Source: Blastocystis sp. Blastoise
Lineage: Eukaryota; Protista; Bigyra: Opalinata
NCBI GenBank assembly: GCA_039096225.1
Contig: JBBPEB010000014.1
Span: 1,674,001-1,738,000 of the forward strand
Reading direction: 5' to 3'
DNA length: 64,000 nucleotides
The position numbers and the translations under genes are program-made. Under the pieces are notes generated by a model. It was not told the origin of the DNA and did no database searches. It worked only from the letters and a program-made list of their open reading frames with translations. Numbering within the stretch: position 1 is the first letter of the stretch; every line of letters begins with the position of its first letter. Below are positions 30,993 through 37,400 of this stretch, piece by piece.

Positions 30993-33170
30993 TTCTTATT
31001 TCTAGTCTTAATAAAATAAAAATATAAATAAAGTTGAAATCTCAGTATTATCCAACCTGAATATTGACAACAATATCTTTCAAACTGAAGACTTGCTATT
31101 GAGAAAGCAACGCCATTTAGGGCATTTTCGACTGGGGAAAAAAAACAAATGAAATCACTTCTCCTCTTTCTTAGAAATGATATCTATTTCACAAATTCTC
31201 GCAATTCATGTATATAGGCAAATTAGCGGAATATACCGAGAATTGGCAGGGAGCGCGTCATTTGTTGTTTGAAAAAGCATGTGAATGTGGCAAAACTGAG
31301 AATCTGAACGGTAAAGTCATCATAGACTTATGTTCATTATATAATCACTTTTCTCAAGAAGTTATAAAAGACATTTTCTAGAAAAACAATTCTTTCCCAT
31401 GAAAAAACACTTCTTTTCTTGTGTTTTTGTGAATTGTTTTATTGTCATTTATACCTAAGATACGTTTATTAGAGAGGTTAATTTACTTAAATATAGACAG
31501 ATTCAATAAGAGCTTGTTGTTTCACTTGAAGATAATCATTTTGGATTGCACTTTTCTTAAACAACCCCATTTTAAAACTCAACAACTATTTTTATTTTTT
31601 AAATATATACAGCGCATAACAAAACACAGAATGAATTTGAATCTTTAAACAATTAACAAAAACTTTGCCACAAGAAACCGTTCTCATTTTATGCGTATTC
31701 TGTACAATCTATACAGTTTTAACAATATTTAATCGTTTCATTGTGTTTCGTATAGGGTTTGGTAACTTAATAATTTGATAAACTAGTCAAATATGTTAAT
31801 TATACTGGCATATACTGTCTTCTTTTTTGGTATTGTATCTTGATATCTATATACAACAAGTGATGGTTGCAAGCCAAATCAAGTTTGATGATTAATAACT
31901 TTAAAGATTCTGCATTTTTGCTTGTAAATGGAAATATATTAGAATATACGAGCCAATACTTATTGATATGATTGGCATTCTACCTCATAATGATATATAG
32001 AGGAAATAAAGAATTAAAAAGCAAATTCTTCAAACACATTTTAAATAATTAAAAAAGCAAAAAGGTCTTGTTGCCTTTCTAAACAAATTTTTTATAAGGT
32101 AATTTATGTAGTACTATTTGTTTGACAATATAAAGAAGCAGATTGTTGATCATAGTTGATATTATTTGTTCTTTGAATGTTTTTCAAGAAAAAGTTTCTT
32201 GATAATTTAAACAATAAACTATAATAATACTATCATTTGGGATAAACTACAATAAAAATAGAGAAAAATAAAAGCAATAAAAACCAAAGAGTATATATGA
32301 TCTTATTCTATCAAAAATCATATGAACAAGAATGGTAATTAGATAAAACAACCAAAATATAAAAGATATAAAAATGAGAAAAAAAGAAGCTCCTTGAAAA
32401 AAATCATTTTGACGGAGTCTGTCATGTTGTTTTGTCCTTGTGTTTTTATTGTATTTGGGTCAATTGGGTCCTTTTATCATTCTTTTCAGGATTTCTCCTT
32501 TTTATTTGTTTCCCTATTGTTTTTGTTAGTATTTCTCTTTAAATCATAAAGATATAGAATTGAATTGTGTATTCTTGGGTGTATTTAATAGAATTCTATG
32601 GTTTATTTGGTTAAAGCATAAAAACTTTTTTTATCAATGATAAAAAGAATGATTATGGAGTATTAAGTTATTCGTAAATAATGTCAATTATCTCTATAAT
32701 CGAGTCTCATGTGTTTTATTTTTTAAATAGTGAATTTGTAATTGAATTATTATATTTCATGCAAGTAAAGAAAAGTGGAGTATTATTATGTCATGTAAAA
32801 TAATTGGTTCTCAAAGATTTTCTATAAGAATCATTCATTTAGACCAGAATACTAATCATATTCTTCATAGAGAGACAGAATGAAACTTTTACTCACTTCT
32901 ATATTCGTCTTTATATCAGAGACATCTCACTGAAATTAGAATGCAATGAAATTTTGCTTGTTATAGATTAATCAGTACCATTAAACAATGACAACAAAAA
33001 CAATGATAATAACTAATTCATATAAATGAATATTTTTAAATATTTATAAAATATATTTTTTAAACCGCATAAATACATATATAAAGCAACTAAACATAAT
33101 TTTTTAAAGAAAATATTAGTTTTATATTTGTTGTGTTTCATGAGAATCTCTAATAGTGACTTGTTTTCTT

Positions 33171-34467
33171 TAGAGATTTACAAAAAACCGTATATGAATA
33201 TATCACCGGTTTTTTTTTGAGAAAACCGTATATACGGTTTTTTCATTTCTCAGTCAAAATTCCATATTCGGTTTTAAAACCGAATATGAATTTTATTTTA
33301 CTTATATAAAGTCAAATATTAATTTTTTAAAATTGTTTTTTGTTTTATAAGTGTTATATCAGGCTTATTCATATATTTAAATTATTTTTTGGTATGTTTT
33401 TAGAAATATTTTATTATTAATTAGATTATATAGACAATAAAGAGATATAAGCTTAATCTAGTCATATTATAAACATATAATAACTGTTTCTGATAATCTT
33501 AAGCAAGTTATTGGTAGATTAAACTCTATTGATAGTAATCACTTTTTGTCCATTTTGATTGAATCAGTTAATTGTTCTTATATCCTACTCTAACACGCGC
33601 TTATCAATATAAAATGAAGTAACTTCTTTTGGAAATACCATGAATCCGTAACTATAACATTTTTTTATATTATTGGCTATATTTGACTCTATATTATAAA
33701 TAATTACATAATATGATATATATCCTCACTCCTCAATGTGTTCTATTAAATATATGATAATTTCATTGAGATTTATCTATCATAAAATGAATGATGTTTT
33801 TTATTCTCTTAAATACTAGTTATAGCTATATTAAAAGCATGAAATATTTATATAGAGAGATATAAAGTATAAATGAATCATTATTACTATAAATGAGTCA
33901 AATAAAAATAGAATCAATGTACAATTAGTGAAAATGTAATATCAGTTATAATTTATGATATGTAATTATTTATGAAGATGTTGACATGATAGAGCACATT
34001 AATCTGAAAGATATTAAAAACATTTCACAGAATATGTAGTTTTTTAAAGCTCATCAAATGTTGATTATATTAGTTTATTGTGTATTAAATAGCATTTATA
34101 GTAAAGGAGAAATATTATAGTATAAAAAATATCAAATTAAATAATTAATTGCTTATAAAATAGTACTTATATCATGAGTATTTCAACAATATTAGTTTTT
34201 ACATATATACATAACATAATTAACATTATCATAATATAGTAAACAATAAATTCGAAGATACTTTGTGAACAATGTCAACAAATGGAATTGTTTCTTTTTT
34301 TTCTAAGTTTCTTTCTATTACAACTATAATTCTTATGAATATACATAATTAATAAACAATAAAAAAAAAACATTAAAAGAGATATAAGTAAAATAAAAAA
34401 CCGTATATACGGTTTTCTCAAAAAAAAACCGGTGATATATTCATATACGGTTTTTTGTAAATCTCTA
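33171..34467. mobile_element. Non-autonomous DNA transposon, hAT-like (1297 bp)
   Basis: Perfect 73-bp TIRs (33171-33243 / 34395-34467) starting TAGAG; 8-bp TSD GTTTTCTT (33163-33170 and 34468-34475); no transposase ORF inside. Confidence 0.92.
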
Positions 34468-37400
34468 GTTTTCTTAATTGACGAATTACAGCCCTAAAGA
34501 TATATATAGTATGAATAATATATTCAACAAATGATTTATTATCATATATATATTTAAAATATATATATAAAGAATAGTATATATATATATAAAAAAGTAT
34601 ATATTCAAATATACTTATTTTTCTTGTTTTGGTGAGTACTAACAATAACAATAATAATAATAGCAATTAGAAGAATGACACTAGAAATAGATCCTACCAA
34701 TAATAAAATACTAGTACATTGCTCATCTGTTTCAGCCCATGTTATAACGTCATCATTTAAAACACATTGTTTTATTTTTTGACCAAAATATCCAGTTTCA
34801 CATGGAACAGTAGTATATTGATTAATAACAGTAGTAGGATAAATATCAATAGAATTACAGAATCCTTCTTGTAGAGAAAGAGTAAATGTAGTTGTTGCTA
34901 TACCTTTTGAATTATGAGCAGTAACTGTATATTGTTCTATAAATGTATTTAATTGTTTTGGTATTCCAGTTATCTCTCCATTTGTGATATTAAATAATAA
35001 TCCTTTTGGAAGATCTATATAGTTATTTTTATATTATTTAGTATATAATATAATGTAGTAAAAAGAAAAAGAAAAACTATATATTTATATGATTCTATAT
35101 TTATTCATTAGAAAATATAAATATTCATTTATATAATTATATATATAAATATATACTTGGAGTAATAGAGAATTGTTCAACAATATTTGTATAACTGGGT
35201 TTAAATGGTTCAAATGAAGTATATGTATATAAATGAAGAGTATTTGAAGGATAATGTATATTAGAAGGTAATAGTAATATACAATGATCTCTATTTTCAT
35301 TATCAAAATATAATCCATCACAATAACGAATAGAATATCCTTGATACCCATATCCACATACTTTATAACTACTATCTCCTTCACCTACTATAGGATAATT
35401 ATCTATACTACTACATAAACTACTATCATATTTTCTATAACCAAATTGTAATTGACTTAATGTTAAGGATGATTCTTTATTCCCTTGGGTTTGGAATTCT
35501 ATACGAATATAACGTACTAATAATAAACCAAAAGGAACAGAAATATATTCATCTTTACCAGCACTTATATCTAAGGAATACTATATATATATAATAAAAT
35601 ACATTATTTTTAAAATACCATATATATAAATATATATATATATATAAAATACTTAATAAAAGAATATATGAAACAATAATAAAAAAAAGTGAATATTTAA
35701 ATTAATATACATTTTCAAGAATCGGTATCCAATCATAATTTTCATTTTCCTTCACATATATAAATAGATTTCTATGTATATCTTCATGCCAAGCTTGTAT
35801 ATATAAAGTATTATATAATAATATATCGTCTTCATTAAATAGTATATTAATAATAGGAAAAGAATCATAAAATTGTGTTGGTTCTAAGAAATTATGATTA
35901 AATAAATTACTTAGTGGATACTCAGGTTTAGTTTCATAAGAAGAAGAAAATAGAAAAGAATTATAATAAGTAGAATCTATACTATAATCATATATTGAAT
36001 TTAATAAGAAATAAACTTCACTAAAAGGTTGGCTAGATTCTAAAATAATACCAATAATATTATTTTTACTCTTTAACGGTTTATTTTGTAACATATAAGT
36101 GAATGCATGATTATGATTCGAATTATTATCTTGATTATTCTTATATACTTGAACTTTATTTATATATACTGTTACACTACCTGTAGCAAATAAACTAAAA
36201 TGAATTGCATTATGAGTTTGTATATCAACTAAATCAAACTATATATAAAATAATGTACTCAAAAATATATATGTATAGTATTTATTATTAAATAATCAAG
36301 ATTTATTGTAATATATATATAAATAAAAATTAGAATATATATATAATATATATTATAAAATAATAAAAACTTAAAATAATATTTATATATATATATAGAA
36401 ATAATTAGAATATATAGATAAATAATAATATATTTATACATAAGAACGAAGAAGAACAACTCTTTGATAGACTCCTTTTAAGGTTCCTCCCGTGGTTCTT
36501 TGCCATTTCTCTATATTATATTCTCTATTAAGGAAATCTAAAGTATATGTATCAACCATATTATAACTCCATTCTTGATTTTGAACTAAAGGGGATGATA
36601 AATCAAATAATATAGATTTTGATGTTTCTGTATTCAATAATGTCCCTGATTTATATAAATTATGTTTTTGATTTGTTATATAATAACCAGAAGGAGAAGA
36701 AAATGCTTGTTTATTCTCTGTAGTAATAGTAAATGTATAATAATCAATAGGAACACATGAAGAATAATAACGATGCAACATTTTCTCTTCATTAGGATCA
36801 TATGTGCTATATATATGTTATTATATATTATTATATATTATTATATATTATTATATATTATTATATATTATTATTATACATTATTATATATTATTATATA
36901 TTATTATATATTATATATTATTATGTATTATATATTATTATGTATTATATATTATTATGTATTATATATTATTATGTATTATATATTATTATATATTAAT
37001 ATATATATTATATATATTATATATATTATATAAATTTAACTAGAAAAAAAAATAATACAATATAATAACAATAATAAACAGCATATATATACTACGAATA
37101 ATAATTTGTTACAGTTTTTTCATGAATATATGTATCTCCTTTTCCTTCTTTTCCTCCTTTTAATAAGATTTCTATATCACGATATATATTATTATAATAT
37201 AAATCAAGAATAACCATATCTCGACCATCCGTACATTCTTCTAATTTTATAATTAATGATGTTTCTACTGTATTACCTATAAAATTTTTAGCAGTAATAG
37301 TATATTTAGTAAATTCAACAAGTTCCGTGGGGAATCCAGTAATATGTCCTGTTTTATTATTAAATAAAAGTCCTTGAGAAAGAGAAGGAGTAATACTAAA

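Follow-up and report, generated by a model that had tools for sequence, protein, structure and literature searches.

A hAT-like transposon, probably of recent insertion, in the terminal coding exon of a Blastocystis membrane-protein gene

In a stretch of 64,000 nucleotides from the genome of Blastocystis sp. 'Blastoise' (hereafter the window; GenBank assembly GCA_039096225.1, contig JBBPEB010000014.1; record coordinates equal window coordinates plus 1,674,000, in the same orientation), a non-autonomous cut-and-paste transposon that most probably belongs to the hAT superfamily appears to have been recently inserted in the terminal coding exon of WA158_002408, a gene for a giant membrane protein that we also call paralog C. 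The insertion point would lie directly 3′ of the codons for a conserved juxtamembrane motif, K-x-E/V-I-x-x-L-R-K. If splicing of the transcript follows the paralogs and translation continues into the element, the ectodomain, the transmembrane helix and the juxtamembrane motif would all be kept; the protein would lose its last 13 residues, including the ...H-E-x-x-Q-I end common to some paralogs, and gain 16 residues encoded by a terminal inverted repeat and ending VFF, with the original 3′ flank displaced 1.3 kb downstream. We favour, with a probability of about 0.7, a young insertion that is an ordinary insertional mutation in a redundant family, with no mechanism of variation behind it.

Structure and class of the inserted element

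Blastocystis sp. 'Blastoise' is strain Rus-B, whose host is the Russian tortoise; its genome is of 33.3 Mb with a GC content of 23% (22% in the window) and gives a diploid k-mer signal (PMC10690189). Transposable elements make up 5.6-7.5% of tortoise-clade genomes, and Blastocystis mobile elements have so far been summarised only as a percentage of the genome (PMC10690189). Our literature search for hAT or other DNA transposons of Blastocystis returned nothing specific, and no publication citing the assembly accession GCA_039096225.1 was found.

A first-pass annotation of the window had placed a hAT-like element inside the last coding exon of paralog C, with perfect terminal inverted repeats and an intact target-site duplication, and the insertion was confirmed at the positions listed in Table 1. 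The inverted-repeat arms (33171-33248 and 34390-34467) are of 78 nt and 97% identical, their outer 73 nt being the same on both sides, and the 8-bp duplication GTTTTCTT abuts both ends. A 39-nt terminal probe matched only two sites in the window, the two repeats themselves, against 0.00 expected. Both termini are TAGAG, which fits 5′-YARNG. The left inverted repeat holds AAAACCG/CGGTTTT repeats and the palindrome AAAACCGTATATACGGTTTT; the AAAACCG heptamer occurs 12 times in the window, where 1.9 copies are expected, and 10 of these 12 sit within the outermost 112 bp of the element on its left side and the outermost 71 bp on its right. A further subterminal palindrome, present at the left end only (33257-33294), brings two more AAAACCG motifs. 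As the element has no open reading frame (ORF) longer than 48 amino acids, it has no coding capacity. By its anatomy it is a non-autonomous cut-and-paste transposon.

Elements of the hAT superfamily have 8-bp duplications and YARNG termini (in the Repbase/Kapitonov-Jurka classification), inverted repeats that are usually shorter than 30 bp, and subterminal repeats to which the transposase binds; the transposase itself combines a BED/DDE core with a hAT dimerisation domain at its C-terminus and is encoded by an autonomous relative with the same termini. Duplications of 8 bp are also possible for P, Merlin, MuDR, Zisupton and Novosib elements. The combination of an 8-bp duplication with YARNG termini and subterminal repeats makes hAT the best label for the element, although an unproven one. 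At this one site, GTTTTCTT agrees with the target consensus nTnnnnAn at position 2 (T), but has T rather than A at position 7.

Exact searches with the terminal 20-mer over nine loci and a permissive blastn search over the window and 12 loci returned self-matches only, besides meaningless AT-rich matches of about 60%. Exact scans of JGI metagenomes gave no match to the first 24 nt of the inverted repeat, nor to 25 nt of flank. Elsewhere in the genome, a 274-amino-acid gene (positions 6178-7002 of locus L012, contig JBBPEB010000009.1), 3 kb upstream of the paralog WA158_000775, has a weak match to DDE_Tnp_4 (PIF/Harbinger-type transposase) and was the one transposase-like gene encountered in the loci analysed, so that a DNA-transposon superfamily other than hAT is present in the genome.

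The repeats are perfect, the duplication is intact and the former end of the coding sequence is still readable beyond the element (see below); we infer from these features, as the first-pass annotation did from the first two, that the insertion is recent.

WA158_002408 belongs to an old family of giant membrane proteins

Deposited proteins were mapped back onto their own loci to obtain exon structures; exons were used as single queries, and the codon positions gave the frames across junctions. The protein deposited for WA158_002408 (P0078) has a signal-like N-terminus and a He_PIG match (E = 1.9e-13). The closest relatives of its last large exon are six paralogs from the same genome (P0111, P0145, P0126, P0108, P0148 and P0207), to which it is 27-36% identical in pairwise comparison, much as the other members are among themselves. 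A word-based search with P0078 returned only the protein itself, bacterial He_PIG proteins and one paralog of 26% identity, and a profile-free HMMER search found same-genome paralogs of at most 36% identity and one distant metagenomic relative, with no ortholog. Among fragments from other assemblies, no candidate was found for the ORF from the intron to AVIRQLRK or for the repeat-encoded peptide, and an exact look-up of the single-exon ORF 37092-37715 of the window as a called gene gave no record.

The family thus delineated comprises at least seven anciently diverged paralogs of Blastocystis sp. Rus-B. They are type-I membrane proteins of about 1,600 amino acids, with a signal-like N-terminus, a He_PIG/Ig-like and Cys-rich ectodomain, one transmembrane helix and a basic cytoplasmic tail of about 30 residues. 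Paralog C resembles WA158_002161, 002186, 004421, 000895, 000049 and 000775 in domain content, exon structure, transmembrane helix and juxtamembrane motif. All six paralogs read ...C-T/V-S-I, then the transmembrane helix, basic residues, K-x-E-I/L-x-x-L/I-R/K-x and a native tail of 11-25 residues, which mostly ends in Q-I or I. The present reading of C does not match such an ending; unlike the rest of this He_PIG / F5-8-type-C family, the present allele of C is without its native C-terminus.

Could the insertion have struck a silent or decaying pseudogene, with no consequence at the protein level? The exons of C have a GC content of about 21%, against 30-33% in its neighbour, paralog B, the family is large and redundant, and the tail is already disrupted. 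However, the reading frame runs uninterrupted through 23 exons, the splice sites are intact, and C retains 103 of the 116 alignment columns that are invariant in the six paralogs, the same number that a leave-one-out comparison gives for each paralog in turn, as well as all 14 family-invariant Cys residues. We therefore regard a pseudogene as quite improbable; C would be an intact and long-conserved member of the family that was hit recently.

Two further membrane-protein genes of the window, paralogs A and B, had served in the first-pass annotation as the models for a tail with a hydrophobic end. Their tails are as described there (KTTKI for A, 140-4093; KAVKV for B, 24650-29446), but A and B belong to other subfamilies, in which the tail is coded without the phase-2 intron described below. 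The B-type giant membrane proteins are WA158_002407 and about 20 others. Their C-termini conform to a strongly conserved K-(A/S/T/D)-(V/I/L/T)-K-V (P0001, P0009, P0016, P0018-P0025, P0031, P0033, P0034 and P0036), as do those of distant homologs in ENA metagenomes, which suggests a functional sorting or binding signal, where C-type proteins mostly end in Q-I or I. Gene B (24650-30992; 30-33% GC; seven exons, one of 5 kb) is also in sharp contrast to gene C (34418-42115; about 21% GC; 23 exons, with (TA)n-rich introns).

An old phase-2 intron sets the frame of the terminal exon

The first-pass annotation had read a spliced frame ...AVIRQLRK into the inverted repeat, and this frame is borne out by the paralogs. 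In the five that were mapped (all but P0148), the last three exons are of 418-445, 397-403 and 61-103 nt, and a phase-2 intron splits a Lys codon as AA/GTAT...TATAG/G. Paralog C has corresponding exons of 424 and 400 nt and the equivalent junction AA/GTATATTTGA...ATCTTTAG/G. Its exon 34615-35014 codes for the He_PIG domain, the Cys motif, the transmembrane helix (34712-34641) and the juxtamembrane STHQNKKN-K, and ends with the AA of the split Lys codon. In a relative from a higher-GC Blastocystis in the ENA metagenomes (locus L006), an intron of 31 nt lies at the same codon and is followed by EEIRKLRE...QVLI and a stop codon; since the same codon is interrupted in both, the tail intron is old, and common to tortoise-clade and higher-GC Blastocystis. 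(Beyond the stop codon of this relative, at a distance of about 120 nt, lies a tRNA-like sequence, at about 6604-6676 of L006.) When AVIRQLRK was compared with the core motifs of the paralogs (AEIKRLRS, EEIRVLRM, VEIQNLRK and others), it scored 116, whereas stop-free 8-mers drawn at random from the window scored 49.6 ± 16.9, a fraction of 0.001 of them reaching 116. Homology thus supports both the tail-intron splice and the frame of AVIRQLRK as predicted here.

The deposited model of WA158_002408 differs from this reading. It skips the donor at 34614 and joins a donor at 34711 to the same acceptor (last intron 34711 to 34494), so that it is without transmembrane helix and tail and ends ...DEQCT-RL-stop; against the paralogs it aligns gap-free except for 50 columns, which are the missing helix and tail. 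Because all six paralogs keep the helix, followed by a tail with the K-x-E-I/L motif, the deposited model is very probably wrong. Splice sites were scored with position weight matrices built from 120 mapped introns of the gene family (consensus GTATATAT...TATAG; median length 115 nt, maximum 465 nt); the scores of the competing sites are given in Table 1.

A coding sequence that stops before the element, leaving the latter in the 3′ untranslated region or flank only, could take either of two forms. In the first, the deposited 34711/34494 splice is real and yields a secreted protein without the helix, which stops at 34488-34486; in the second, the exon is left unspliced and reads to ...HQNKKNKYI followed by TGA at 34607-34605. 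The first has in its favour that the deposited P0078 does end at 34486 and that the annotation pipeline gives preference to introns supported by RNA-seq (PMC10690189), and the second that its end is hydrophobic and reaches a score of 10 in the C-terminus comparison described below, as do 3.5% of ORF ends. On the other side, the six paralogs and the metagenomic relative all keep the helix, the intron and the xEIxxLR exon, the homology of AVIRQLRK is significant, and the donor at 34711 scores below that at 34614 (5.7 against 7.1). Moreover, seven B-type models of the same annotation also are without the helix, suggesting that Ile-rich coding DNA is systematically mis-called as intron. An early stop is, in our estimation, improbable.

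The seven B-type models (P0002-P0005, P0008, P0013 and P0014) jump from ...SINGKI to the KEKKEKK tail, and sister models keep the helix. DNA coding for Ile-rich transmembrane segments resembles the GTAT...TATAG intron consensus, and these models may be due to systematic mis-calling or else to a genuine secreted isoform.

The old C-terminus and its predicted replacement

The insertion lies eight codons into the terminal exon. The minus strand translates from 34492 to 34418 as AVIRQLRK-LEIYKKPYMNISPVFF-stop; the last base of the proximal duplication (34468) opens a Leu codon, and all that follows is inverted-repeat sequence, the right repeat giving, in the orientation of the gene, the codons of LEIYKKPYMNISPVFF and then a TGA stop at 34420-34418. 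The predicted new tail ends ISPVFF. A run of nine T residues (34428-34420), identical in both repeats, precedes the stop, so where precisely the new tail ends is determined by a homopolymer. The transposon-encoded tail (34421-34468, minus strand) has a YxxPhi-like YMNI and a terminal FF, which are similar to classical signals for membrane trafficking but, in AT-rich coding sequence, may well have arisen by chance.

On the far side of the element, the minus strand translates from 33169 to 33122 as RK-QVTIRDSHETQQI-stop. An empty allele of the insertion site would read ...TTAAGAAAAC joined directly to AAGTCACT.... Removal of the element and one copy of the duplication restores the old tail, as the first-pass annotation had held. 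C-termini were compared by an alignment anchored at the stop codon, with 3,533 ORF ends of the window as background. The old tail, IRDSHETQQI-stop, scored 20 against KRTDHEPLQI-stop of P0108, a value reached by 0.08% of ORF ends, whereas the transposon-encoded end scored at best -1 (reached by 52%). As P0111 ends in EPLQI as well, this anchored match indicates that the orphaned DNA is the native end of the coding sequence, and that the tail before the insertion would have ended ...QVTIRDSHETQQI.

Two other considerations were set aside. The length of the old-tail ORF was rejected as evidence, being uninformative because 44% of random 13-codon windows are stop-free in DNA of 22% GC. Stop codons created by polyadenylation, a trait of Blastocystis, were rejected as an explanation, since the tortoise clade keeps canonical stop codons (PMC10690189).

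The element could, alternatively, be removed from the mRNA as a new intron, introner-like or Ds-like, and the birth of an intron would then have been caught in the act. Each inverted repeat has a consensus Blastocystis donor (GTATAT), and the junction of element and duplication creates an AG. Splicing from the donor at 34448, upstream of the TGA of the repeat, to an exon beginning at 33167 would be in frame, the donor leaving two nucleotides of a codon and the acceptor giving the third codon position of the old frame; the product, ...RQLRK-LEIYKKPK-QVTIRDSHETQQI-stop, would have the old C-terminus behind an insert of eight residues. The cryptic donor scores above the gene's own tail-intron donor (7.9 against 7.1) and above 97% of decoy GTs, the candidate acceptor scores above 93% of decoy AGs, and non-autonomous DNA transposons turned introns are documented (PMC9860276). 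Against this, the intron would be of 1,281 nt, where the longest of the 120 family introns has 465 nt; the candidate acceptor has A at position -3, where 96% of real acceptors have T; the element has no acceptor of its own; and no further copy was found inside any of the 120 mapped introns or elsewhere in about 300 kb of the genome. We consider removal as an intron unlikely. If it did occur, the gene would have put up with a DNA transposon in a coding exon, and a new, unusually long intron would have come of it.

Excision and the proposed switch of tails

The first-pass annotation went further and proposed that the tail could be switched back and forth by excision, so that the transposon would drive variation in a host-facing protein. 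The perfect repeats and intact duplication would make the element structurally competent for excision, given a transposase, and the gene stays translatable with the insertion. The host-facing part of this proposal does not follow, because the alteration is confined to the distal part of the cytoplasmic tail, which follows the single transmembrane helix, and the ectodomain is untouched. A clean toggle is not upheld either. Excision of hAT-type elements normally leaves footprints (Ac/Ds, Hermes), and an event that left both 8-bp copies in place would move the frame by +2, to another long ORF (33013-33141). To regain the old tail, excision would have to be precise, which is rare. The footprints, this frameshift and the failure to find, in about 300 kb, a partner for the non-autonomous element together make a clean toggle unlikely. 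The insertion is furthermore known from one locus in one assembly, and the six paralogs examined have no parallel insertions. A reversible switch between two cytoplasmic tails is thus a very improbable reading of the locus, and nothing at the locus points to a programmed switch or to selection for the new tail.

Several points weigh against the young, ordinary insertional mutation that we prefer. The splicing of the tail intron, the read-through into the repeat and the expression of the gene are all deduced from DNA; the annotation pipeline, which prefers introns with RNA-seq support, produced a deposited model that uses the donor at 34711 and ends before the element, and should that junction be genuine, a part at least of the transcripts would stop short of the insertion. 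The support for the old tail comes from a C-terminus-anchored match to one or two paralogs; compared with the pooled paralog tails, it does not rise above a composition-preserving shuffle (z = 0.98). As to the class of the element, perfect inverted repeats of 73 bp are atypically long for hAT and nearer the lengths of Mutator-like elements (MULEs) or Merlin, and no transposase, autonomous partner or second copy was seen in about 300 kb of genome (the window and about 240 kb of other loci). The insertion is probably neutral to mildly deleterious. As the genome is diploid, it may also be heterozygous, with an intact allele coexisting.

Table 1. Coordinates (window numbering) of the insertion in WA158_002408 and of the splice sites considered; a slash marks the splice junction, and percentiles are those among real sites.
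Feature	Position	Strand	Remarks
WA158_002408 (paralog C) as deposited	34486-42115	-	P0078; 1,584 amino acids; 23 exons
Penultimate exon, as proposed here	34615-35014	-	400 nt; equivalent paralog exons 397-403 nt
Conserved phase-2 tail intron	34494-34614	-	121 nt; GTATATTT...CTTTAG
Present terminal exon, to stop	34418-34493	-	host 34493-34468 (AVIRQLRK); transposon-derived 34467-34418
Target-site duplication, gene-proximal copy	34468-34475	+	GTTTTCTT; codes part of ...L-R-K
Right terminal inverted repeat	34395-34467	-	perfect, 73 nt
Non-autonomous hAT-like DNA transposon	33171-34467	none	1,297 bp; 20.8% GC
Extra subterminal palindrome	33257-33294	none	19+19 nt, 89%; left end only
Left terminal inverted repeat	33171-33243	+	perfect, 73 nt; starts TAGAG
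Target-site duplication, distal copy	33163-33170	+	GTTTTCTT; 8 bp; abuts element
Orphaned original coding end (putative)	33122-33163	-	QVTIRDSHETQQI and TAA (33124-33122)
Tail-intron donor, model proposed here	34614		score 7.1; 23rd percentile
Donor of deposited model	34711		score 5.7; 11th percentile
Acceptor shared by both models	exon resumes 34493		score 10.2; 45th percentile
Cryptic donor in inverted repeat	34439-34451	-	ACC/GTATATGAAT, G at 34448; score 7.9; 26th percentile of 120 donors
Candidate acceptor	33167-33187	-	...TCTCTAAAG/, AG in distal duplication; exon from 33167; score 4.4; 12th percentile

Other features of the window

An EF-1alpha gene lies at 57157-58476 on the minus strand; the identical 439-amino-acid protein is encoded at two loci (contigs JBBPEB010000014.1 and JBBPEB010000017.1) with entirely different gene neighbourhoods. 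Adjoining it, at 48490-49197 on the plus strand, is a gene for a 235-amino-acid protein with three Clostridial hydrophobic-W (ChW) repeats (E = 6.5e-32), a bacterial-type domain on a eukaryotic contig that may reflect horizontal transfer. The motif TGTTTTGTT occurs six times in the window, where 1.08 copies are expected. Four copies, at 57090-57098 (-), 49256-49264 (+), 49290-49298 (+) and 24449-24457 (-), are found 59-190 nt beyond stop codons, on the strand of the gene (EF-1alpha, the ChW gene and paralog B), and a variant longer by one T (about 33003-32993, minus strand) lies about 125 nt beyond the old stop of paralog C. The motif is similar to one known from human subtypes, the downstream gene element, which according to the genome paper is not enriched in tortoise isolates (PMC10690189). 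Two long homopolymeric stretches were also seen: an ORF at 13510-15054 (+) has more than 100 consecutive Asn codons, an in-frame homopolymer tract, and the ORF of paralog A (140-4093, +) has a poly-Ile stretch of about 80 residues, which is probably an unannotated intron.

Discussion

The locus offers sequence-level evidence that a cut-and-paste DNA transposon was very recently active in tortoise-clade Blastocystis, and an element of this kind, if mobilisable and with its ends defined, could be developed into a genetic tool. It provides no evidence for a new mechanism of surface variation. The analysis also proposes a correction of the deposited gene model, an instance of what appears to be a recurring annotation problem in which helices are spliced out of the models of giant membrane proteins in an AT-rich genome, and it defines a conserved juxtamembrane motif, K-x-E-I-x-x-L-R, together with an ancient intron of tortoise-clade and higher-GC Blastocystis.

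Among known systems, the closest in structure are the exon insertion alleles of the Ac/Ds type in maize, such as those of Ds in adh1, wx and sh2. Like these, the present element has an 8-bp duplication and YARNG (TAGAG) termini, is without a transposase and is inserted in coding sequence, and both have clustered subterminal repeats, AAAACCG here and AAACGG in Ac/Ds. In Ac/Ds exon alleles, transcripts either run on into the end of the element or are spliced at cryptic sites close to its termini, the two outcomes considered above for paralog C. Unlike Ac/Ds, however, the perfect repeats extend over 73 bp rather than about 11 bp, the host is a stramenopile gut protist, and no autonomous partner was seen in about 300 kb.

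Introners (Gozashti et al. 2022, PMC9860276), which are non-autonomous DNA transposons giving rise to new spliceosomal introns, share with the element the combination of inverted repeats and a duplication inside an exon, with an in-frame donor in the element and an AG at the boundary of element and duplication. An introner would, however, be expected in many nearly identical copies, each an intron of an unrelated gene; here, one copy was seen in about 300 kb, it is 1.3 kb long where introns have a median of 115 nt, and the acceptor is weak. Finally, as in transposon exonisation in general, a transposon would give a host gene its terminal codons and stop. In contrast to the usual cases, there is no sign of selection, the event appears very young, and the old tail is still readable 1.3 kb away.

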